The translations under genes and the position numbers were made by a program. From assembly GCA_965202585.1 (NCBI GenBank), contig OZ241830.1:434001-498000 (forward strand): a stretch of DNA of 64,000 nucleotides. The letters are read 5' to 3'. Positions 23,401-64,000 of this stretch are shown piece after piece (position 1 is the first letter of the stretch; each line of letters begins with the position of its first letter). The DNA is from Thalia democratica. Its lineage: Eukaryota. A model generated the notes under the pieces. It made no database searches. It was not told where the DNA came from and saw nothing but the letters and a program-made list of their open reading frames with translations.

Positions 23401-26400
23401 TAAAGAAACGGTTTCATTATGTAAGAGTAAATTGAAAAAATTACAAAAATAATCTTCTTTTGCTTTTTACATAAAAAGCGTAAAAACACGAATGTCAGCT
23501 AAAATATGAATCTTACAACTAAAACAAGAACTTCATTAAATTAAAAAAGAAGATTTACAAAAGTTTTAAAAATAAAAATAAAGTAATATTTTCTATACAA
23601 ACCACTTTTGATTGGGGTTGTTGTCACAATTTGGTGATTTTGGTACATTAGTGTCCTCACAAGTGTCATCAGTCTTGTAATGAACAGCAAAATCGTCATA
23701 ATTGTCGAACAACAAACCTGATGACGTCATCAAATCGTCATCCGGGTCATCGTTGAAGTTTCCGCATAACCCCTCAACCTGCAAAATTTCGAATATAGTT
23801 TTGTTTTTAATATTATTAACTCATACACTTTGTGGTTTGCATGTTGCTTTTTTTTTAAATTTCTTTAACTAAATGCAGCATATGATATATTTCGAACCAT
23901 GTATTTGTTTTTAAGTTGTTTTACTCGCGATTCCAATAAGTTACAGAATACATATAATAGACCTAATATACATAACAAGTCTATTAAAAAAACATATTGA
24001 GACTTAAGAACCTAAGGTACTTATTTAAACATTTTACTTGACAAAACATTCAAAATTTCTTCAACAAACCTTGGTTTTGTAGAATTCAGGTAGTAATATT
24101 CTCAATTTATTTTCATTGAATTGAACTTCAACACCGTGTTTAGTTGTTAATACTGCCGAGCTTCCTGAAGGTTGAACTTTGAAGTTTGGTGATTCAAATC
24201 CTTCTACTTCTTCGCCGTTTATCTGGAAAAAAGTTTAAAATCATTTTATTTATTTCGGCTAGCTTTTATTGTTAATTTAATCCTGATTCCTGTTGTTAGT
24301 TCAGATACTTTATAACTTTTAATATTATTTGTTTGTAGAATTATACTTTAAAATTACTACACTGAGTACTGTGAGTTATTATGATTTATTGTTTGAATTT
24401 GGTTCTTAGTACTCGATCTTAAAACTTAGAGCAGAGCCTATTGTAGTTTGAGGATAAAAACAAACACCGTTTTAAGTTTAATCGCTATCAATCAAACTGT
24501 CTTTATAAACATTTGAGACGGTTTGATTGACAAAATTCAAACCTGAAACGGTAGTTAAACAGTATTTGTTTTAGTACTTAACTTGAAATAGTTTTATAAA
24601 AACACCTGTTACGTTTTGTATTAAACTAACAACAATAAAAAAACAAACTTATATATTTATATCGGTTTTTAAAATGGTAAATCTAAGTTGTCTAATAAAC
24701 AGTTTTTCTGTAAGGTTGTTACTTTTATCAACTAAACCCACAATGATTCGTTTTTGTTGCAGCAGTTCAACACTTGTCTCTCCGCCCTGCAGCTCAACCC
24801 GGACTTTCCCCAAATAAGAAACTTGTTTGAACCCGTGCCTCCGCTCATTGGTGGTGACAATTCTCAGCCACTTGGGGTGCTCTGGCGGCAAGTCAACCGT
24901 TTCAACCATGACATAGCTGCACGCCCCCATGAAATCGTACTTCTGTCCAATCCTGTCGAAGGTCTGGTAGTGCGGGTCGCCCCACGACATGCATTTGCCC
25001 GTTGCTAGGGGCTCGCATTTGTACCTGTAGAATTATAAAATTTGAATTATTACCTTATTGTTTTATTTTTAGTATTCATTTTAACAGTTAAAACCTTACA
25101 TAGGCAAAAAACACAAAAAATTTTCACCCTGTAAAGTACAAAGTACCATAATATCCTTTGTTTGACTTTAGTTATGTAATTTATCATTAAACTAATATGT
25201 TTAAATTTCAGAACTTAGTTACACCATTAAAGTAATTAAATTTTTACTAGCTTTGAAAACTTTAATAGATCTTAAAGCCGTTTTAATCATTGAAGGTATT
25301 AATAGTTTAAGCTTTTGAAGTGTTTAGTGTTCAGCTACTTACAACACTACGTAATGTATATAAAATCAGCACATCTCATACCTTCCATGTTCGGATTTTT
25401 CACAAATTTCTCCTTCTTCACAGCCCCTTCTACTCCTGCAAGCGAGCTTACCCCTGTCGCATTTACACTCCAACTTGCAGTCGTTCAACATGAAGAAGGA
25501 CTTGTCCTTAATTATTAATACTTGTACATTTCATGTTTGTAAATATCAAACAAAGTTTTCAAACCATTTATTAAAACTTTGCTTCAGCTTTAAGAAAAAC
25601 TGTAAAGTTCAATTTTTTTTAAAAGAGTACAGAAAACCTTCTATTTTGGTTTTAAAGTTAAATACGACTTTTTATGTTTTTTTTGCGCTAAAAAACATAA
25701 TCATACTTATAACTCACTTTATAGTATTTAGCACCACGGAAGCAGCCACATTCCTCCTGTCTGACGCAATCCGTCCCGGACATGACGTAACCCTCCTCAC
25801 AGACGCATCCCTCTATACACCGGTCGCATGGGGGCGATATCGAGTCCATCTTCGCTTGGTTCAACAGGTAGAAATTTGAAATCGAAGAGCAGTCTCTGAT
25901 GTCACAATGCGAGTAGCATGACGAGTAGTAAGCGTTTGGTCCGCATCGTTGCGCTGTTTCGCGGATAATGTAGCTTTTTAGTTCAAAATTATAATAGTTT
26001 GTTTTTATCTAGTATTATTAATAACATTTTATTTACTTAATTTCGTTTGTTTTCATAAATTTACTTGGTATAACAAAATAAAGAAAGTCTGTAAGTCGGT
26101 AAGTTTGTCGTAAAAATCGCGTCCGATTGAAAATTTTAACAAACGCTAAATAGAAAAAATATTTTTGTAGTTTCGCTTGAACTTTGCGTTTTACAAGTTT
26201 GTTATTTATTGTATTGTAATTCTATAGCATCAGTTTTACGAACATTTTCAAACATATTCTAAAGTTAATGCTTTTGTTTTTGAACAGTGAATAATATATT
26301 ATTGTTGTTATTATTGACACACCATAAAAATTTTGTTGCTATCAACTTTAGAATGCTTTCACATACTTGAATTTTACATCAAATCAACAAATGTTGTTTT

Positions 26401-47400: not shown

Positions 47401-50400
47401 TTTTGTACATTTCAAGTATTATTATTGTTGTGTATCTTTAAACTGTATAAAGATTTTAAAGTGTAATTTGACTAATATTTCTAATACAGTACATTAAGTA
47501 TTCGTTGATATTTTTGCTTTTCTTTTACTAGAAGTTGAGACTAGTACAAAAGTTTTTGAGAGCTTTTGTCTTATTTTTATAAAAACTTGAAAATATAATT
47601 AAGTTCAACAGTTTGGATTAAGTTTTTCCTAATAAAGTATATTTCAAAAAAATTAACTTTACAATTTTAAATACGCTTATCAATCTTAAAGTTATCAAAG
47701 TTTAAAATTTTTTATTTATTCATTATACTTCCTTACGAAGGTGTTTAATTATTCATCGTGTTAACTCTTTGCTTTGGGTTATGCCACATACTTTTAGAAA
47801 CACAAGCTATTAGATATTTAAGCACAAAAATTAAGTGTTTACTTTTATTACAGTTTGAAAGTATAATATATGAACTTTTTTTTGATAAAATCATTTTTAA
47901 TACTTTTTCAAAAAAAAACATTAAATTTAGATGTGAACGAGTCGTTTCTATGAAGTCAACGAAACTTAAAGGTCAAAATGCATGAAATTTAAATGATATG
48001 TTTGTTTTCTAAATAATATAGACCAAACTTTTCTGAAAACTTTAGTTGTAAAAAAAACTGATACTTACGTGTACTAAGTTTTTTATTCATTTTTTATATA
48101 ATGAAATGGAAGCTATCTATCATTATATCGATCAGATGAAAAAACTATATATAGCTTTTAAAATGCAGCTTACAATGTATTTCACACTTTCTAAATGATT
48201 GATTATTTTATGCTATTTTTCTTAACAAAAACAAAAACATTATTTAATTTGAAACTGACAAAACTTTACATAAACTAAAGTTCTAGCTCTTTCTTAAAAT
48301 CTTGCTTTTAGCTTTTTTATCAATATAAGTCAAAAATATTTTCAATCAGTAGGTTGTTTTTTAAATAATGTAACGTTAATAATTATGTATTTAAAAGAAA
48401 TGTTTTAAATTATTTACATAAGGTTTGAACAATCAACACGATTTATTTTTAAACAAAAAAAATTGTTAAACAAAACAAAAAAAGTGTTCAACAGTTTTAG
48501 AGTACAAACAAAGCTTATTAATAAACTTATTATGACGTCACAACGTACCGGGAGGGGCGCATCTGAAATGTAGGTCGATGTACTTTTCAGTACCGGGACA
48601 CGGGTCGCCTAATTGTGACGTAATAGCACGTAATGTGCACATCTGTTTACCCTGGCACTCCCCCCAAATTTGTTTGAACGCTGTTTGCGATTTGCATCGC
48701 GTGTTCATTGTGACGTCATTATCGGCTCTGCATCTGTGTGAAATAATTGGTATCAGTGCAAAGAAATTTTTTTAAAGTAAAAGTTATGAACTTGCTACAA
48801 AAGTTTGAAAAAATCTATAATTAAAAAAATGAAACATAACTTAAGTATTTTGCTTAAAACTATAAATTTTATTTCATTAAACTTATAAACACTTTATTAT
48901 AGCAAAAATAAAAAAAAGTATACTATTCAACTCAAGGTTACAAAATAATCTCACGTATGTGAGTCGGATCTCCCCCAGAAAGCATCTTCAATGTAAATAA
49001 CAGATCCCCTGTTCTTACAAGACACCCTGTTACCCACTCCTTCACAGATCTTCGTCACAAAAGTGTAAGGTGATCCTGGGATCATCAAGTCGTTCCCAAA
49101 CTGGATCTCCTCTGTTTGTTTTAATTAATAATTTTTAGCTTTTAATAGCTTTAATGACTTTGTTTTTATTTATTGGCTACTTAGATAGCACAAAAAAAGA
49201 GTGACATGAATCTCCTCTAAAAAATGTATTTTCCGTTTTTAATACATCAAGTATCAATGACCAAACTCTTAATGGTATTATAGCAAGTTTCTATGACAAA
49301 AGGCATCAAAATTTTTTTATAAAGTTATTAATTTTTTCTTTTCTATTATTTGTTTTTACGAACGAAAATAATAAAAGCGCAACTATTTTTTTATTTTTTA
49401 CGTGGTTTACTAAATAAAAGCACCTCAGGAGTTTATTGTTACTTTTTACTACTTTACTGCTTCAAAAGTCAGGTAAAAGTTTAGATTTTTTATATTGTAA
49501 GCATACTTAAAACTTGTAGTAAAGAGTTGACTTAAATTATCTATTTTTGAATAATAACTCTAGCGATTCGTACTTAGAATCATCAAAATAATGTTTGCAA
49601 GGAATTTAAAAACAAGTTTAATGTAAAAAAAATAAATATAAAATGTATTTTAAGCTTAACAGTATTATTTCTTGTGAACATTAAAAAAGTTATTTAAAAG
49701 CCGCAAAAAGTAATTAGAATATTAAACTTGAGCAACTAAAATTTGAGTAAAGTATATTCTAGTAATAATTAACTTTTACATGATAACATCTAGTAAGCGC
49801 GTAAACCGGTACATATAGGTACAGACATGTATTAAAACTTGTATTTTGGAATACAAGCTCATTTGTATGTTGACTTTAAAATACTTGGTGCACTTTTTAA
49901 AGTTGGAAATTTTTCAATTTAATTATCTGTTTATAAATATCCCTTTGTGTAATCACTGTAGGTATAAGAACAAATTTAGGTAAATTGTTAAGTTTCAGTT
50001 AAAATGCTTTATACGACTTTAATTTTCTTCACAGTTAAGAAAATTGTTACTTAATTAAAGTTAAAAAAAAGCTTTCCCAAAAACTAACTGTACCTAACTT
50101 TAGTTCAAAGCAGTAGTTCAAATACTTTAAGTGGTTTTTAATGTTTATAGTGGAAGTGAAAGTTTTCAGCAACTTTCAAACAAATCATAATATTTACGAA
50201 ATTCGAAGATAAATTCACCGCAAGCAAGTAGCCTCGCACGCGTTTAAAGTTAAACATCAAACTTTTAACTTCTAAAACTTGTAAGTTCTATTTGTTTTAC
50301 TTTGATGTTTACTTTATTCAGTTGTGATATTTCTTTTGTTTTATAAGGTTTTTGATATAAAAGTTTTAAGTTATTATAAATGAACATTGCTTATTGCTTC

Positions 50401-53800: not shown

Positions 53801-54604
53801 TAAAAACATTAAAAAACAGCTAATAAAAGGCTAAATTTATAAATGCACCACAAAAAATAGGCCGTAATTAAAATAATGCTTTGTTAATATAAAAGATATT
53901 AAAAGCGTCATTCTAATATACAAAAATATTTAGTTTTTTTTCAATGATAACAAATTGAATTAACTATTTGTAAAGCTTTTACTTAAAAAAATCGATTTTA
54001 TATGTATCATAATTGAGTTATTTTTTTGTTTATAAACATGCTAGACTTCCATAAATAAAAAGAATTGCTAAAGTTTTTTCAATCACAAACAATGTACTTA
54101 AATAATTTTACTAAGGTACTTTTTACAACGCTATAATTGCCTAAGTCTTTTTTTCATTAGTATTATAAATTGTTATAGGTGTATAATGTGTTTGTTCGAT
54201 ATTTACATGTTCAACTTTTTATAAACTTGAAAAAATCCAAGTTGAAAATAACTTTCAAAAAGTTTTAATCAAAAGTAAACAAAAAGTTAAATACAACTTT
54301 GTTTTAACATATTTCTACCAATTTACAACGTCTTTAAAGTTTTAAAATTTGTAAGTGAATTCGAATCATGAAAAGTGCTTAGAAACGACTTTTTAAATAA
54401 TTTTACTTCGTAATTTAGTAAGTTATCATTCAAAATTGTAAAAAAAGTGAAACTAAATTTCTAACAGAGTTTATTAGTTTGAAAAATTTCGTTAAAAAAT
54501 GTCCAAACAAACTTTACTTAAATTGTTTTTACAAGTAATTAGTTTTCAAGTGTTGGTGCAGCAATCAATAACTGACAACGGCCATATTGTTGTTACAACC
54601 AAAG

Positions 54605-54612
54605 TATAAAAG
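54605..54612 (+). promoter_or_regulatory. TATA box of gene B
   Basis: TATAAAAG ~60 nt upstream of ATG 54666. Confidence 0.6.
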
Positions 54613-54665
54613 CCCCAACTTCAAAACTTTTGTCATCAAACTTACTTGTCAACTCAAGTTGAATC

Positions 54666-57600
54666 ATGAAGTTTATCGTGTTGTTCTCACTCTTGGGACT
54701 TTCCCTAGCTAACACTTTCAACAGCCTTGATGGCGGTATTGTCGGACCAGGTATGTTGAATAGTATTTATTCATTGGACTGTAAATGAATCAAACTGTTT
54801 TTGCAATTGTTTAGTGTAGATCTACTATCAATTAATAATGTTTATAGATAGTTCGGTTTTCTTCTTACTATTTTAAGTAGTAAAATAAACATGCAAATAG
54901 TTATGGGTTTAAGCTGCAATTTTCAGAAAAATATTCAAACCTTTAGGAAATGGTTTTGCTCAAACTTTTTTTTTTTACCATATACCATCTTTAAAGTAAA
55001 TTAAGCAACTATCTGAAAAATTTAATAAAAAATATGAAAGTTGCACTGGTATTTATAAATGTTATAGAAATATTTATTGAAACAAAAAACTCATTATGAA
55101 CTTGCTTGTTTGATCAAGTAACAAATAATAAGTTGGATTAAGTCGATATCATAAATGTTTATTAAACTACACATAAACTAACTTCGGAAAAACTAACTTT
55201 TAATTCATTGTATCTAAAACTTTTATTTTTGAAAACTTTTGTATTTAAATCATTGTTATAACAAAAATATTTCTAATTTTTAGGACAACGTCAAGGTCAA
55301 GTGATAGGAAGAGGTAAATTAAATTTTATTTAATATTTATTTAGTTTTTATTTTGCTTTTTGTTTTGTTTTATTTTTATAACTGTTTCAATATCAGCTTC
55401 AAAAGTCAAAGTATTTTGTCAGCCTCATTAAATAAACAGCTCTATGAAGTATTTTAATTTGCTTTAATACTTATAATAAAAAAATATTTTTGTTTCTTTT
55501 AGTCACAAGACATTAAAGATAATATGTTTTGACTTGCATATTTTTGTTTTAGTTGTAACCAAGTTAAAAACTCCAAAGTTGTTTTTTTTTAGTTTATTTA
55601 CTACAATATGAAAAAAAACCTAAATAATCAAAATTTTATAAATTTCAGGAATCTACTCACCAACACCAGTTGCTAGAAAAGGAACCGGTTAGTTTTTATT
55701 TGTTTTAAATGTTTTGTAATGACACTTTTAAACATAAACGGTGAAAATGTGTAAACATCATAACTTATAAAAGCGAACCCTGTCCCTGTCTATGTTTTAT
55801 TTTTTACCATGTTAAATGTTTACAACTTAAACAAAAAACTTTTGTATTAGAGTTTCTACTTGTATGTGGTCAATAAGTACAAACAAAGTTAGTAAAATCG
55901 TACAGACGGCAGAAAACAAAATCGTACTTATTACTGAACAGTTTTTCACAAGAATGGAGGGTGCTTATAAAAAAGGCGACATTTGAATTTTCAGCTGAAA
56001 GCTCTTTTACATTTGGTCATTACCACAAAAAAAAATATTGTGAAAAATCTTAATTGATCTAAAGAACAGTAAAAAGGGGGGTAAAAATTTTTCTTGAAAC
56101 AACCCGATGTAAAATGTATGGGACCTTATAAATTCGATGTTCAATTTTTTGGCTTGAAATTGTTCTACACGTAAGAATTATCACAAAACACATTCTGCAA
56201 AATTTTAGACGATATAGGTAAGTTTCAAAAAGGCATTTTTTTACTTTCTATAATTTTTTATAACTTTTCGTAACTTTAAGTTATTTTGAAATGATCAAGA
56301 AATGTCTTCGTAAACTATTTTCAAATCGTCTAAAATTTTGCAGAATGTGTTTTGTGATAATTCTTACGTGTAGAACAATTTCAAGCCAAAAAATTGAAGA
56401 TCGGATTTATAAGGTCCAATACATTTTACATCGGGTTGTTTCCAGAAAAATTTTTTCCCCCCCTTTTTACTGTTCTTTAGATCAATTAAGATTTTTCACA
56501 ATATTTTTTTTGTGGTAATGACCAAATGTAAAAGAGCTTTCAGCTGAAAATTCAAAGGTCGCATTAGTTGTAAGCATCCTATTTAGCATATTCACATCAT
56601 TTTACTAAATATGTTTACTGCAGCTTACTAAACTTCTTCTAATAATTTTACTATATATATTTTTTACAGGAACTTACTAAAACTATTTTCACAGGTACTT
56701 ACTACAACCCACCACAAAAGAGAGGTGCTTACGTCCCACCATACGCTCCACACTACAACCCAACCCCACAAAAATCAACCGGGTATGTTCCAGCCCCACA
56801 AAAGAGAGGTGCTTACGTTCCCCCATACGCCCCACACTACAACCCAACCCCACAAAAATCAACCGGGTATTACCCACAACCAACAAAGACCCCTACCTAC
56901 GGTGGTTAGTTTTGTGGTATATAAAAGTCTTCAGTTCACTTACTTGTAAATGTTCAAGGAAGGTTTAAAAAACTTTAAAAAAAGTTATAACTTTGGTTTT
57001 CTAAACACAGAGAATAGCTCTTTACAACTAGTATGTACTGGGTAATAAGTTGATAAAGTTGTTTGTACAACAAGGTCTTTAAGCTTTAAATTAAGGTTGA
57101 AAAACATGCAGTACAAGGTCATACTGAGATAAAAGATACCTTTATGCCTAAATGCACAAAATTACCATGTAAAACAGTAGTAAAAGCAAATTAAAATTTT
57201 ACGAAAGCTTAACCTTCCTTTTGGAACTCAATATACTACTTTAACTTTAATTAAAAGCCCATAAACTTATGATTATCGCATAAGCTGCTGTTGTAATAAA
57301 GTTTTTAGAAGCATTTATATAGTTTGTATTGAAGAATTTATAACAATACTTATGCAGTATTTTATTGATTGTTATTTTGCTATTTAATGATTATTAAAGT
57401 ATAAAAGTAAACTAAAAACTGCTATGTGTATAAAAATATGTAAACTTAAACAATGATTACTTAAAATTTTTAAGATCACTTTTTTTACTACTGTTAAAAT
57501 CAGACAAGGAAAAAAAAAACTGTTTTTATTTTCAAAAATTTTAATAAAAACAAACTACTCCACTCATTATGTTTAAAAATGTGACGTCATAAAATAACTA

Positions 57601-60600
57601 TAGGCAAGACCTACGGAGGCAGAACTTACACCCCAACCTACGGAAAGAAGACCTACACTCCATCATACGGAAAGAAGACTTACACCCCAACTTATGGTGG
57701 TAAGGCGTTCGCTAATATTTTTGTTTGATTTCTTAACATCGTGTTGTTGAACTGTTTCAAACTGTTATCAAGTTTACTAAATTTTTTTCTAACGAGATCG
57801 TTAATGTTTTACTATGACTTAATAATCATACTATTCTTTGTTTAACTTTATTTGTATTACCTCGTTTAACTGCAGAACAGCTCATCTGACACAAAAAACC
57901 CTGAAAGCAAAATATAAATTTTGTAATTATTAAAAATGATCGAAATAGGTTTTAGTCAAAAAACAAAATCTATGTTGTAATCTGAATTCATACGACGTAA
58001 TTGATGATATTTTCCATAGGTAAGACTTATGGAGGCAAGACCTACGGCGGAAACACTTACACCCCATCATATGGTAAGAAGACCTACACTCCATCATACG
58101 GAGGTATTTTCTAATATACATAAATTTGTCATATTGGTGTTGTTACATATCATGGTTTATTATATATAAACACACTTTCAAAAATAACTTTTAAAATTTT
58201 TGAAATATGTGATTGACACCTTTTGGTATTTGAAAACTAAAATTTGAAAAAAGTGAACATATTACGTACAACCATCTTCTTTTAATTATGACGTCATAAC
58301 ACAGGTAAGACTTACGGAGGCAAGACCTACGGTGGAAACACTTACACTCCATCATACGGTAAGAAGACTTACACCCCAACCCCAACCTATGGAGGTATTA
58401 ATTTAAATTGTTTAACATTTAATATCAAATTTAATGCTATTTTTTGGTTTTGTTCTAAGAAAAGCGTTACAAGTGAAACCTATTACTAGCGATTTAAAAA
58501 ATATGTATTTTTGTACATCATTAGTGACAACCAGATAAATGATGATTTAAAAGTAAAAGAAAATATGTTGTTGACAATGGTTACATGACAATCTAAATTT
58601 AGAAAAAAAATGTTAAGTGGCAATATCTTAAAAAGTAATACACATTTAAAAAGAACAAAAAAAACAGTTTTAGATCTTATTTATAAGACTTTGATATAAA
58701 AAAAAACATGTATATTTCCTAAAGGATGATTTTTGAAATTAATAAAAATAAATATATCTAAACAAATTTTAGCCATAACTCATAAAATATTTAAAACTTT
58801 GCAATCCCTTTTTAAACAATTTTTTTCTTCGAGATAAGACCTTTTATAAAACACTTAATTGTCCGAATTTGAATGGTCGTGCACCTATAAAAAACCACAA
58901 AACTTACAAAAAAATATTTAAGGAAGTTATGCTGTACTTACACTATTAAATTATCAGCTTTAACCTTCCAAATAAATGCATATTGAAAAAAAAATTGAAC
59001 AAAAACTAAACATATTGAGCATGAACATTTATTCAGTCAAAATAATGCGGTATTTTTTTGTTTTTAATAGAAAAGATATACTAGCATATAAATACTTGCG
59101 GTCAATTATTTTTTCAAGAGCAATCTTGCAAAATCATCTTATAGGATTTGCATAACTATTTAATTCAAACATTACACATGAAAATAATTGTGATGCTAAA
59201 AGCATGTGTCAACACATGCATTTATTTCTGTTTTATTTTAAAATTTTAGCAAATAAATGCACTGGTTGGCAAATTGTTTTCGTTTTCATTAAACGCACTG
59301 TATCTACGGTTAAGTTAAGTTTTTACATTTTTCTAGTTATTTTTAGATACAGACACCTTTTGTGAATCTACGCACATTGTAATACAGCATAAGTGCGTAA
59401 CTAAACGAGAGGTAGCAAATATATTTGCTGTATTGACTGTTTTTTAACAATGCATTTGATTAAATCAATTTTTGGACTTTCCTACTTTTAATCACTTGTT
59501 TAATCAACTAGTTTTCATTTAAGTTGCATTTATGAATGTAGTTTAGTGTTGTAATGGCTGTCTTTATTTGAAAAAACAGTGGTTGAATGCAAAAAAGTTT
59601 ATTGATAAAAATTGTTTTTGTGTAGACTTTTTTTTCTAATTTGTTACTTGCCCAAATAAAATTAAACCTTTTTGCATGGTATTATAAAAAATTTGGAGTT
59701 TTATAGAGTTGAAATAACATTGTATGCTATAAATATTGTAAAGAAATGAACATTGTACCTTATTTAATTCATTTAAATACATAAAGGGGGGTTAAGACAC
59801 TTAAGATATAAAGGGCGAAGTCATAGAGTTCAATAGGTTCCAAATGGAAGGCACAAACTAAAAATGCAAATTTCTAAATTTTATAAAAAATACATTTCTT
59901 CCTATATATTTAAAAATATTTAATTAAAACTTTTATATTTCTTGAGAACTCTAAAATGCGTAATTAAACGAGAATGCGTAACCAAATTAGTACGTAGATT
60001 CGCAAGAGGTGACTGTAATGTCCTAATTTGATCAAAATGTTTTACGAAAATTTCTTCGAAATGATACTAAATTGTACAAAAGTCTAACAAGAATTTTAAG
60101 TTAAGCTTTTCTAAATTACTTTGTTAATGTTTGACTGTGCTTTAATAATCATAAATAAAGTTCAAGGTAAATTTAAGTCAAAAAATATAAATCTTTTGAC
60201 GTTATAAAAAAAATTTAAAAGGTAAAACTTACGGAGGAAAGACCTACGGCGGAAACACTTACACCCCATCATACGGTAAGAAGACCTACACTCCAACTCC
60301 AACTTACGGAGGTATTTTATTTATGAGTATAAATTCGTCATATTGATGTGATTGCGTGATATACGGTTTATTATATACAAAAACACTTTCAAAACTAACT
60401 TTTTAAATTTTTGAAATATGTGATAGACACCTTTTGGTATTTGAAAACTCAAATTTGAAAAAAGTGAACATATTACGTACAACCATCTTCTTTTAATTAT
60501 GACGTCATAATACAGGTAAGACTTACGGAGGCAAGACCTACGGTGGAAACACTTACACTCCATCATACGGAAAGAAGACCTACACCCCAACCTACGGAGG

Positions 60601-61271
60601 TTTGAATTTACATTTATAATTTCTTCATACTAATAGGTTTATACAAAAAAAAAAAAAAAACTAAAATGTCTTTCAACAAAGTTTTACAATAGAGTTTTAC
60701 TGTTATATATAATAACTAAATTCCGAGTTTAAAAGTACAACTAACGTCTTATAAAATTTGCTTATATTTAAAAAAACTTATAAAAAAGAAATATGTTGAA
60801 AAATAAACGGTTTTTAATACCATAAATTAGTATAAAAACTTTGTTTTTTACTTAAAATACTTAATAAAAAGTGTATATGTATTTACATATGCTCTAAGTA
60901 TCAGCTTTTTGACGTCACTATGTATTTCCAGGTAAAACTTACGGAGGAAGAAACTACGGAGGTGAATATTGTTTAAACTACTTTCCGTGAAAGGAAACAA
61001 TTTTTATATAAATTACTTAAAATTATCATTTTTGATTGTTTTAAAATATATCAGCAATATGTCAAAAATTACTTAAAAAAAAAAATGTCGTAAAAAAGTA
61101 AGTTTAAAGTATGAACATTGAAAATAAGTATCTGCCTTACAACGTACAAACAAATACAGCTACCAAGGTCTTTCAAAGTTACAAAAATAAGTAAATAGTA
61201 AACTTTGCTATATTTTATACAGATACTTTGAAATCATAATATAAATTTCAGGTAAACAATACGGTTACTAG
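54666..61271 (+). CDS. Gene B: secreted Tyr/Gly/Thr/Pro/Lys-rich repeat protein, 285 aa, 11 coding exons
   Basis: Exons 54666-54750 (MKFIVLFSLLGLSLA signal), 55284-55313, 55649-55687, 56695-56904, 57604-57699, 58020-58103, 58305-58394, 60222-60311, 60516-60599, 60932-60961, 61252-61271 (TAG). All introns are phase 1 and GT-AG; 858 nt. Repeats KTYGG, KKTYTPSYG, TPTYG. Confidence 0.88.
55958..56580. mobile_element. Foldback/MITE-like element with ~256-bp inverted arms and ~110-bp spacer in gene B intron 3
   Basis: 55958-56213 is the reverse complement of 56325-56580 with few mismatches; no clear TSD. Confidence 0.8.
58020..60599 (+). repeat. Duplicated exon-intron-exon block of gene B: 58020-58394 vs 60222-60599
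   Basis: The ~200-bp introns 58104-58304 and 60312-60515 align nearly end to end, sharing long identical tracts such as gaaaaaagtgaacatattacgtacaaccatcttcttttaattatgacgtcataa. Confidence 0.9.
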
Positions 61272-61725
61272 ACGTGAAAATCAAGTTGATTACTTTGCAA
61301 AATTATTTGAAGGTTAGTAGTATTGTTTGTTGATTAATAAAATTAGTTGCTAATTTACTTCTATAAGGTTTAAGTAATTATTATTTAAATTAATAGGCTT
61401 AGCTAAAGTCTCTACACTAAAATAACTTGTTTTATATTTTTTTATGGATATTAAAAAATAATACTTTATTTAGTTACACATTTTTTATATATTGTTTAAT
61501 CAAATAGACATTATTGAATTAATCTTTCTATTCAAAAATAAAGACGATTTGATGTTAAAAATTGTTAACTTTTGTTTTTGCTTATAGCTTGAGACTAAAA
61601 TATGAATTAAATATGTATCTTAATTTCTATTACTAATTTTTGCAGATCATCAAATACCAAAAAAGAATTCCAACATAGATAACTTTGTTTTGTTTTTAAT
61701 TTGTGTCTTCGATATTTTCAATAAA
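61272..61725 (+). other. Gene B 3' UTR with probable intron 61313-61645 and AATAAA signal at 61720
   Basis: gaag|gttagt donor 41 nt after the stop; tactaatttttgcag| acceptor; AATAAA 61720-61725. Confidence 0.5.
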
Positions 61726-64000
61726 CTGCATTAAATCATCTTTATGTTAATTGTTTTAATAAACAGAATTTTAACATTTTTATGCGATCGTTCTGGGTTG
61801 TAATTACTAAGAAATAATAATTAACTTCAGTATTAATCTTATTGAAAAGATAAGTAAAATTTTTAAACAAAGCTTACGAAAAATCAGCAAAGCTACTTTT
61901 AAGTATGAGACAAATAAGGTGGAAAATTAAATCTTTTTTTTTTAATATAATCGTGAACAGTAAGTATCTTGTTATAAACTATTGGTGTAATTATAAGAGC
62001 AAATGTTTTTAGTGCAGTTACTGCATTTTCTATATATTTCGGTTTAAATACATGCAAACTTAAAACAAATTTAAATACATTTATGTAAAAAACATCAACA
62101 TAAAAAGTTGAATTAGCATATATAATTTAATTAAAGATAATAAAACGCTCAAAATATTTGTTTCTAGGACCTGGTGAGCAAAAAAAAAAACTTTTAGCTA
62201 TCGATTCGCACATCACGGATACTTTTTAATGTCTTATCTTGATAAGATAACTAAGTAAAAAAAAGAAAGACCTATCGTTTTTAAGTTGCTTAAATGCTGA
62301 CTTTCTTAGAAAAATTATTTAGTACGACTTTATAAAACACAACACTTCAAATATTTTTGACTATAAACATTTTATAGCCTAATAAGTATGATTGAAATTT
62401 TTAAAAGTTAACTTAGTGTTATTGTCTAGGTCAGTGAATGTAAAATGTTCACCCTCCATTAAATGATATAATAGTAAATACAAAAAAGTGCCCTGAACCT
62501 ATAAATCATCTTTAGTTTTTAAAATACACTTTTAAGTTATTTACATAGTTACTATGTAGTACATCATAAACATAAAGTTAGATTTTAATATTTTGTTTTC
62601 TATGTTAGTTCTAAAATTATCTGTGTTAGCAAAGTAAGAGTGTTATTTTATTTTCAAGTCTAAATTATTTCAGTATTTTTTTGTTAAAATGGTTGTATAT
62701 ATTTTTTATTATAAACCAAAAGCTACTTCAATCTTAATGATAATTTTTAAGAATTGCTAAAATAAAATAAACTTCTTATTTAAAACTCATAAGTTTTAAT
62801 TTAAAACACTTTTAGTATTTAAGTTCACCTACAAACTTTTATCTTACATCTAATTGTTGAAAAATATATTTCCATAAAATTCTGTATTAATTTGTTGGGT
62901 TGAGAGTAGTTTCAGATGTCAGGATTTATTAATTTAAAAAAAGGTCACAAACAAATTTTACAGAAAAATCGTTAATTAAATGCAGTATATAATTTGAAAA
63001 ATCTATATAGTATTTTATATAAAGTTTATTGAAAAAGAGGAATCAAAAAGTTCAGTTCTAAGACCTGGCGCACGAAGAATCATTTGGTTATTGAGTCGCA
63101 CACCACGGATACATTTTAACGATTTGTCCAGGATTTGAATTGTAGGTTAATGTATCTAAAACTATGCACACCAATAACTCGCTTTTAGTTTTTAACAAAC
63201 AAGAGAGCCAAATATAATTCTAGATTAAAAAAAGCTTAAATTGCAAGAATTATTACTTTCAAAGTAATTAAACCATGTCTAAAAAAGTAAACTACTCCTT
63301 CCTAACAAACATTTTACGCTTAATATTACTTTAATTGAGATAGCAAAAAAATTCAACCAAGCTATAACATACAGTTATAAAAAATTACTACTAAAATGTC
63401 ATTAACCGAAGATTAGTAGGCCTACAATTTGGGTTAAGAAAGTTAATTTTAGGTCATATGGGTATATGTTACTGATTACTTTGGTGTTACAGCTGCGTAC
63501 CAAGCAGCATCGCAAAAATAAAAAATGTTAACATCAAGCAAAGTTCTTTTACTCCTAACTAGAAAATTAATATTTTTTGTCATTTTATTTGATTTGCAAC
63601 GAACAAAACTTAAACTGAGCTCTACTGTATAATTTTCAGGGGCAACAGACGCACCCTATAAAGTACAAAAACTAGTAAATATTCACTTATAGCTACTAGG
63701 GTTTGTTTAACATTTTGTGTACAATGAGTTTTTAAAAAAATAATAATGGATTGAATTTAAAACCCTATATATTCTTATGTACAACTGATCTGACTGATTG
63801 AAATAATTAAATTTAAAGTTTGCAGTTCAATATTGTGACACCTACAAAACTTGATTCAGATTATAAACAATTCTGTATTATTGAAGACTTCAAAGTCAAT
63901 TTAAGATCCTTTTTATATCGTAATCTTTGCAATTATACCTACATTAACATTGTCTGTTATATTCAAGTTAATGTTTTTATTTTTGAAATATGGTTATCAA

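Follow-up and report, generated by a model that had tools for sequence, protein, structure and literature searches.

A split gene for a predicted secreted tyrosine-, lysine- and glycine-rich repeat protein in the salp Thalia democratica: a candidate component of the tunic

The locus and its gene model

The stretch of DNA analysed here (64,000 nucleotides of Thalia democratica, assembly GCA_965202585.1, contig OZ241830.1, positions 434,001 to 498,000 of the forward strand; called the window, whose numbering is used throughout) carries, at 54666–61271, a split gene for a predicted secreted protein made largely of Tyr-, Lys- and Gly-rich repeats. A large gene for a Cys-rich extracellular protein lies on the opposite strand and is described further below. 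The model of the Tyr-rich gene was rebuilt from a reading of positions 54000–62000 by joining segments flanked by AG and GT. Eleven exons (Table 1) together give an 858-nt frame encoding 285 amino acids (aa). All ten introns have GT..AG borders and are in phase 1, so that a Gly codon is rebuilt at each junction from a G at the end of one exon and GN at the start of the next. An in-frame stop codon directly precedes the ATG of exon 1, and signal-peptide cleavage is predicted to occur after SLA from the −3/−1 rule.

The original prediction, made from the sequence without database searches, described a 'microexon-encoded' gene of 11 phase-1 exons of 20–210 nt. The exons and their joining into a single frame were recovered as described. 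The epithet suits four of the eleven exons (exons 2, 3, 10 and 11, of 20–39 nt), which hold 119 of the 858 coding nt, but not the bulk of the coding sequence, which lies in exons of 84–210 nt. Exon 4 is itself internally repeated (84 nt, 96% matches). Two alternatives to the model were rejected. The tandem copy of the exon-4 acceptor junction supplies a decoy acceptor 25 nt 5′ of the real one, whose use would shift the frame and lead to a TAA; the homologous cDNA agrees with the downstream site. Alternative frames of the repeat exons were set aside because both the synonymous/non-synonymous pattern and the cDNA support the frame that reads KTYGG.

Table 1. Features of the Tyr-rich gene and its introns. 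P0002, P0003 and P0004 are homologous metatranscriptome protein fragments and L001 is a metagenome contig carrying a homologue (see text).
Feature	Position	Strand	Remarks
TATA box TATAAAAG	54605..54612	+	54 nt upstream of the ATG
Exon 1, 85 nt: ATG, signal peptide MKFIVLFSLLGLSLA, start of mature chain, phase-1 end	54666..54750	+	aligns with P0003 and P0004
Exon 2, 30 nt, QRQGQVIGR	55284..55313	+	P0003 and P0004 have the equivalent VQHPDSPRVGR between the same junctions; absent from P0002
Exon 3, 39 nt, IYSPTPVARKGT	55649..55687	+	KGTG/TYYNPP junction common to P0002, P0003 and P0004
Tandem copy (25 nt) of the exon-4 acceptor junction; decoy acceptor 56669/56670	56661..56694	+	tandem repeat 56661–56708, period 25
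Exon 4, 210 nt: Pro/Tyr/Gln/Lys-rich module, two 28-aa units PQKRGAYVPPYAPHYNPTPQKSTGYV and the first TPTYG	56695..56904	+	
Octamer TGACGTCA	57582..57589	.	15 nt before the exon-5 acceptor
Exon 5, 96 nt, repeat exon KTYGGRTYTPTYGKKTYTPSYGKKTYTPTYG	57604..57699	+	E4/E5 junction present in P0002
Exon 6, 84 nt, repeat exon	58020..58103	+	gene model, exon alignment
Exon 7, 90 nt, repeat exon	58305..58394	+	peptide equals that of exon 8
Exon 8, 90 nt, repeat exon	60222..60311	+	equivalent exon and upstream intron on L001, 81% identity
Exon 9, 84 nt, repeat exon	60516..60599	+	gene model, exon alignment
Exon 10, 30 nt, KTYGGRNYG	60932..60961	+	splice signals and phase
Exon 11, 20 nt, KQYGY and TAG	61252..61271	+	least certain exon; splice signals and phase
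Polyadenylation signal AATAAA	61336..61341	+	65 nt past the stop codon

Evidence that the gene is genuine and transcribed

Several independent features of the sequence indicate that this is a genuine, transcribed gene. The exons have a GC content of 48.4% against 24.4% in the introns. The window as a whole is close to 27% GC (range 22–34%). The published genome values, 25.3% for Thalia democratica and 28.0% for Pegea, are the lowest among tunicates, with a much higher GC in coding sequence (PMC13746493). Codon use in the gene is strongly skewed (TAC 42/48, AAG 24/30, CCA 31/33 and AAC 10/10); in the other coding open reading frames (ORFs) of the window, TAT is about as frequent as TAC, and AAA and AAT are preferred. 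This codon bias and the GC content of the exons may mark high expression. Comparison of the repeat exons (exons 5–9 and a metagenome homologue) gave values of 0.15–0.72 for synonymous (pS) and 0–0.09 for non-synonymous (pN) differences, and the 29 residues specified by exons 7 and 8 are the same in spite of nine synonymous differences, with no non-synonymous difference between them. Such low pN relative to pS points to purifying selection on the peptide. The frame is also flanked by a TATA box and an AATAAA signal, with the in-frame stop just 5′ of its ATG.

Further support comes from three metatranscriptome protein fragments, P0002, P0003 and P0004, which are 61–73% identical to the window protein. 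Together they cross E1/E2, E2/E3, E3/E4 and E4/E5 without a break, at places where the window has introns of 533, 335, 1007 and 699 nt, respectively. The junction texts KGTG/TYYNPP and PTYGG/KTYGGRTY are identical in the homologous fragments, as is the exon-4 stretch TYYNPPQKRGAYVPPYAPHYNPTP among all three. The 5′ untranslated region of P0003 (SNLLV) is colinear with window positions 54636–54650, which would place the start of transcription between the TATA box and 54636. The fragments are entries of MERC, for which Plass assembled 775 Tara Oceans eukaryotic metatranscriptomes at the protein level (bioRxiv 10.1101/386110); P0002 is from ERR1712168 and P0003 and P0004 are from ERR1712183 and ERR1712202. 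They derive from a related gene or species rather than from the window locus itself, Plass may build chimeras where sequences are repetitive, and both P0003 and P0004 appear to have frame-shifted tails. The homologues thus support junctions 1–4, while junctions 5–10 are placed by sequence signals.

Composition of the predicted protein

The full product of 285 aa contains 55 Gly, 50 Thr, 48 Tyr, 33 Pro, 30 Lys and a single Asp, and no Cys, Glu or Trp. The predicted mature chain of 270 aa (approximately 29.2 kDa, pI 9.9) retains 54 Gly and 29 Lys, has 36 Lys and Arg against one acidic residue, and consists of 20% Gly, 18.5% Thr, 17.8% Tyr, 12.2% Pro and 10.7% Lys. The chain length of about 270 aa, the 48 Tyr, the lack of Cys and the lone acidic residue had all been given in the original prediction and agree with our counts, and the KTYGG-type units and secretion signal named there are also correct.

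The N-terminal third is rich in Pro, Tyr, Gln and Lys. The last 170 residues (24% Thr, 24% Gly, 21% Tyr and 14% Lys) are made of (K/N/R)TYGG and TYTP(S/T)YG(K)K units. KTYGG occurs ten times, TYTP[ST]YG nine times, and PSY and PTY six times each. Spacing between Tyr residues is regular, with 23 intervals of five residues and 13 of four, and in the repeat region nearly every Tyr is preceded by Thr or Ser. Thr, Ser and Pro together account for some 34% of the mature chain, which includes 18 [ST]P sites, TPTP among them. GKK occurs six times and KR twice; Lys is otherwise mostly single (GGK), the units are uneven in length, and there are no acidic spacers. A single-sequence structure prediction for a homologue returned no fold (pLDDT 56, pTM 0.12). 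Taken together, sequence and prediction describe what is probably a secreted, unfolded polycation with evenly spaced Tyr residues.

Homologues and exon turnover

Exon pieces and a repeat profile served as search queries. The profile (27 positions, from exons 5–9; alignment A3), run against 1.84 billion representative proteins, returned only two matches, P0001 and P0002. Word-based protein searches with P0002 and with exon 4 found only P0002 and P0003; P0004 came from a further search. There was no match in Pfam for the exon peptides and homologues, none in a PDB sequence search with P0002 at E≤10, and none in Rfam for 54000–62000. A related-locus search of JGI metagenomes produced 186 pattern matches, none of which was confirmed, and a full-text literature search for the repeat motifs found no paper. 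No encoding contig is on record for P0002, and annotated tunicate proteins were absent from the matches of the searches run. Two kinds of candidate were rejected. ESM Atlas look-alikes of exon 4, exon 5 and P0002 (best scores 0.55–0.73) are noise from low-complexity sequence, viral glycoprotein G and coagulase repeats among them. The one match to a degenerate KTYGGKTYGG DNA pattern in metagenomes (L002) is a 15-bp tandem repeat on a GC-rich, bacterial-looking and possibly cyanobacterial contig and is ascribed to chance. As far as the searched collections reach, the family thus appears to be a lineage-restricted orphan found only in salp-like plankton.

P0001 is an ORF on L001, a 653-bp ENA metagenome contig, and is a genomic homologue. 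L001 is 81% identical to window positions 59990–60320, which comprise exon 8 and the intron 5′ of it, and has a single repeat exon in the place of exons 8 and 9. At 503–533 of the same contig is a segment resembling exon 10 in which AA stands for the AG acceptor and GA for the GT donor; both splice sites thus look disrupted. This could be either a decaying exon or the result of errors in a contig of 3x coverage.

Within the window gene, the unit formed by exon 8, intron 8 and exon 9 is a duplicate of that formed by exon 6, intron 6 and exon 7. In P0002, both exon 2 and one of the 28-aa units are missing. These differences in exon number among copies suggest a family in which symmetric exons are gained and lost: phase-1 exons holding one repeat block each would allow the gene to grow or shrink by exon duplication.

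Intron elements and splice signals

The introns contain several further elements. The palindromic octamer TGACGTCA, which resembles a cAMP response element (CRE), is present in 22 copies in the 64 kb against 0.35 expected. Four copies, at 57582, 58289, 60500 and 60910, lie 8–15 nt 5′ of the acceptors of exons 5, 7, 9 and 10, in flanks that have otherwise diverged, and L001 carries TGACGTAA at an equivalent site. In the minus-strand neighbouring gene the octamer is found inside coding exons, as DDVI, NDVI or NDVT codons, and also directly after the donor at 48533; judging from the neighbour's peptides, some further copies (for example at 23722) appear in another frame (MTS). The octamer may be a branch-site or splicing signal. 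If its copies do occur in differing frames, it would be a signal at the nucleic-acid level and not a protein motif.

Intron 3 includes a foldback element of about 620 bp (55958–56580) with nested inverted repeats that are 89–93% complementary around a 55-nt centre, probably a foldback or MITE-type (miniature inverted-repeat transposable element) insertion. Intron 7 has a MITE-like insertion at approximately 59345–60017 with the inverted ends cagacaccttttgtgaatctacgcac and gtacgtagattcgcaagaggtgactg, and L001 starts inside the equivalent right end. Exons 6, 7 and 9 begin AG/GTAAGA (58018–58026, 58303–58311 and 60514–60522), and their acceptors also resemble a consensus donor. The sequence GGTAAGAAG (Gly-Lys-Lys) within exons 6–8 forms additional donor-like sites. 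Since these sites are compatible with phase 1, alternative or recursive splicing at them would be expected to preserve the frame.

The neighbouring gene and the animal

The minus-strand gene, at approximately 7000–50300, lies head to head with the Tyr-rich gene and would encode a large, Cys-rich, net-acidic extracellular multidomain protein. Its parts include many Sushi repeats, a VWD domain spread over several exons, CUB, Mucin2_WxxW, a SUEL-lectin-like exon and, from its Cys pattern, a candidate EGF-like exon. Asp and Glu make up 14.2% and Lys and Arg 8.3% of roughly 2,050 residues read from provisional exons. The first recognisable coding exon of this gene (up to about 50.97 kb) is at least 3.6 kb from the TATA box of the Tyr-rich gene. 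The domains recognised in the window (VWD, CUB, Sushi and Mucin2_WxxW) are those of metazoan extracellular proteins, and the homologous protein fragments were all assembled from metatranscriptomes of open-ocean plankton. A pelagic animal, it lacks a holdfast, papillae and a stolon attachment, sites at which the original prediction had proposed to look for expression.

Comparison with known systems

The nearest resemblance in composition is to the DOPA (3,4-dihydroxyphenylalanine) proteins of marine adhesives. Mussel Mfp-1 is a repeat protein with 10–15 mol% DOPA that forms the byssal cuticle over a softer core (PMC12817120). Like it, the salp protein is predicted to be secreted and is basic and Cys-free, is formed of tandem repeats rich in Tyr, Lys, Pro and Thr/Ser, has PSY and PTY motifs and has no predicted fold. 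It differs in having penta- to nonapeptide units with some 20% Gly and 18.5% Thr rather than a Pro-rich decapeptide, in its size (29 kDa, compared with the 86 repeats of Mfp-1) and in its split gene, in which a repeat block corresponds to a phase-1 exon. Neither homology to Mfp-1 nor an AKPSYPPTYK-type decapeptide repeat was found in the profile search, in Pfam or among the repeat units themselves. The cement of tubeworms combines basic Gly/Tyr-rich DOPA proteins, Pc-1 and Sa-1, with acidic partners (PMC12817120). Both these and the salp protein are basic Gly/Tyr(/Lys) repeat proteins, but the latter is also rich in Thr and Pro (18.5% and 12.2%) and belongs to an animal that builds no tube; the profile search gave no match to Pc-1 at E≤0.001. 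As to an acidic partner of the salp protein, the one observation is the net-acidic multidomain product of the neighbouring gene. As homology was not found and the repeat units differ, the salp protein is not a member of the Mfp-1 or Pc-1 families. It resembles such proteins in composition and could work as they do.

Among tunicates, the holdfast peptides of Halocynthia roretzi carry halogenated DOPA, measure 1.5–2 kDa and consist of about 50 mol% catecholic residues together with Glx, Ser and Gly (PMC13079984). They share with the salp protein a tunicate origin, and their Tyr-derived chemistry is located in the cuticular layer of the tunic. The salp chain, in contrast, has 270 residues dominated by Lys, Thr, Pro and Gly with 18% Tyr, and comes from a pelagic animal. 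Elements of the original prediction hold: the protein does appear undescribed and outside any characterised family, to judge from Pfam, PDB, the ESM Atlas and the profile and protein searches, and its resemblance to Mfp-1 and Pc-1 is consistent with convergence in composition. The adhesives described from tunicates, ASP-1 with its vWA domain and APAP-1 and -2 with EGF-like and VWC-like domains, are likewise unlike the salp protein.

A different comparison is offered by the plant cell wall, whose Tyr-bearing proteins (PPVYK proline-rich proteins, glycine-rich proteins, extensins and TLRP) are made insoluble within cellulose by peroxidase-driven Tyr cross-links. To our knowledge, the tunic is the sole animal matrix of cellulose. 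The salp protein shares with the plant proteins a basic, repetitive, secreted chain of Tyr, Lys, Pro and Gly. This is an analogy only: it has no homology to them and no Ser-Pro(n) arabinosylation motif, and belongs to another kingdom.

With respect to gene structure, the micro-exon genes (MEGs) of schistosomes have most of their coding sequence in symmetric exons of 6–36 nt. They resemble the salp gene in their secreted product and in runs of symmetric exons, whose skipping or duplication keeps the frame. Assignment to this type was rejected: although all internal exons of the salp gene are symmetric (phase 1-1), the small share of its coding sequence in exons of 39 nt or less and the lack of homology set it apart. 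Nor is it a mucin by Pfam and composition, having no VWD or CK domains and no Cys in a chain of 270 aa.

Possible functions

We tentatively favour, by analogy and as somewhat short of an even chance, a coating or matrix protein of the tunic that is cross-linked by oxidation, with the cuticle as its likeliest place. Salp tunics have an outer electron-dense cuticle of about 0.7 µm with a nipple array, which is also present in Thalia democratica and whose biosynthesis is unsettled (PMC5896079). In the ascidian Halocynthia, DOPA peptides enter the cuticular layer of the tunic and are cross-linked oxidatively (PMC13079984). Peroxidasin-like enzymes are also part of the proteome of the larvacean house, 44% of whose proteins are orphans (PMC3390340). 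The steps that we infer beyond secretion would be the following. After bulk production by a secretory epithelium, the protein would condense through Tyr–Tyr, Tyr–Lys (cation–π) and charge contacts with polyanionic partners. A phenoloxidase or peroxidase would then oxidise its Tyr residues, to DOPA-quinone or dityrosine and with Lys as a possible partner, rendering it insoluble. The outcome would be a thin, dense extracellular layer, the likeliest site of which is the electron-dense cuticle or the matrix of the cellulose tunic. In this role it would be a convergent counterpart both of Mfp-1 as the coat of the byssal cuticle and of the Tyr/Lys/Pro/Gly-rich proteins of plant walls.

A number of points weigh against this assignment. 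No tyrosinase, peroxidase or laccase gene lies within the 64-kb window. Junctions 5–10 and the 20-nt last exon of the gene model rest on splice signals, phase and composition. Composition by itself does not separate roles in the tunic, in the feeding net or in an elastomer, and the Thr-Pro motifs could mean that the protein is mainly a glycosylated mucin. In Pegea the tunic is soft and, between 280 and 800 nm, almost transparent (PMC5896079), which speaks against strong tanning by quinones or a bulk matrix rich in Tyr and favours a thin layer, with both DOPA and dityrosine retained as options.

The same features bear on other roles. The excess of positive charge and the abundance of Thr and Pro would also suit a sticky polycation of the mucous feeding net, secreted by the endostyle and binding giant acidic mucin-like polymers into insoluble particle-catching threads; an endostyle peroxidase might in addition act on its Tyr residues, by dityrosine formation or iodination. 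The codon bias, if it reflects high expression, would fit a continuously secreted product, the product of the head-to-head neighbour is Cys-rich and net-acidic, with parts of VWD, CUB, Sushi, WxxW and SUEL-lectin-like type, and tubeworm cement is a precedent for pairing basic with acidic proteins. Against it, the two genes stand at least 3.6 kb apart, each with its own promoter region; we regard this role as the main rival reading, though an unlikely one. An extension of it, in which a cationic net partner offers its Tyr residues as dityrosine or iodine acceptors in the peroxidase-rich endostyle and acts as a protochordate stand-in for a missing thyroglobulin-type iodoprotein, seems improbable. 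A strict catechol glue, based on DOPA or TOPA (trihydroxyphenylalanine) and bonding surfaces such as the attachment plaques between chain zooids, would accord with the Tyr, Lys and Gly contents, which together with the PSY and PTY motifs are of the Mfp-1 and Pc-1/Sa-1 type, and with the occurrence of DOPA peptides in tunicates. We nevertheless consider it rather doubtful, given a pelagic animal with no holdfast and given that described tunicate adhesives are either domain proteins (vWA, EGF-like, VWC-like) or tiny peptides of another composition with about 50% DOPA. For a glue to a substrate or holdfast in particular, the pelagic habit of the animal and the open-ocean origin of the homologues make such a function unlikely. 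Thus, where the original prediction proposed an adhesive or tunic-hardening protein, hardening of the tunic stays the best guess and the adhesive part is weakened.

Three further readings remain. Regularly spaced Tyr and Lys in a Gly/Pro/Tyr repeat with no predicted secondary structure would befit a resilin-like elastomer, lightly cross-linked through dityrosine or lysyl oxidase and serving the recoil of the body wall in jet propulsion, and colourless cross-links would suit a transparent tunic. Resilin has a Tyr content several times lower, however; one Tyr in five residues predicts a stiff network and 29 kDa is small for an elastomer, so that this function also appears improbable. A mainly mucin-like, O-glycosylated lubricant or barrier protein with chemically idle Tyr residues would account for the high proportion of Thr, Ser and Pro and for the [ST]P sites. 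The placement of Tyr after Thr or Ser and the conservation of Tyr positions under purifying selection indicate a role for Tyr itself, and the chain is very small for a mucin; we think this reading very doubtful. The least probable in our estimation is a polyprotein precursor from which short Tyr peptides would be released by cutting at GKK and KR, whether as amidated peptides or as ones of tunichrome or antimicrobial type. Tunicates do contain many small DOPA/TOPA peptides, but here Lys is mostly single, acidic spacers are missing, the products would be uneven in length, and the adjacent Tyr-Tyr of tunichromes does not occur.

Significance

Salps rank with the major grazers of the ocean and with the fastest-growing animals, and the proteins of their tunic, their nano-patterned cuticle and their feeding net are scarcely known. 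Restricted to its lineage and probably abundant, a secreted repeat protein of this Tyr/Lys/Gly/Thr kind offers a concrete candidate for one of these salp biomaterials. Its gene also illustrates how repeat proteins can grow through duplication of symmetric phase-1 exons together with their intron flanks. If the Tyr residues are indeed oxidised, the protein would represent an independent invention of the strategy of mussels and tubeworms, in a chordate and inside a cellulose matrix, and would be relevant to the evolution of biological materials and to the design of bio-inspired coatings.

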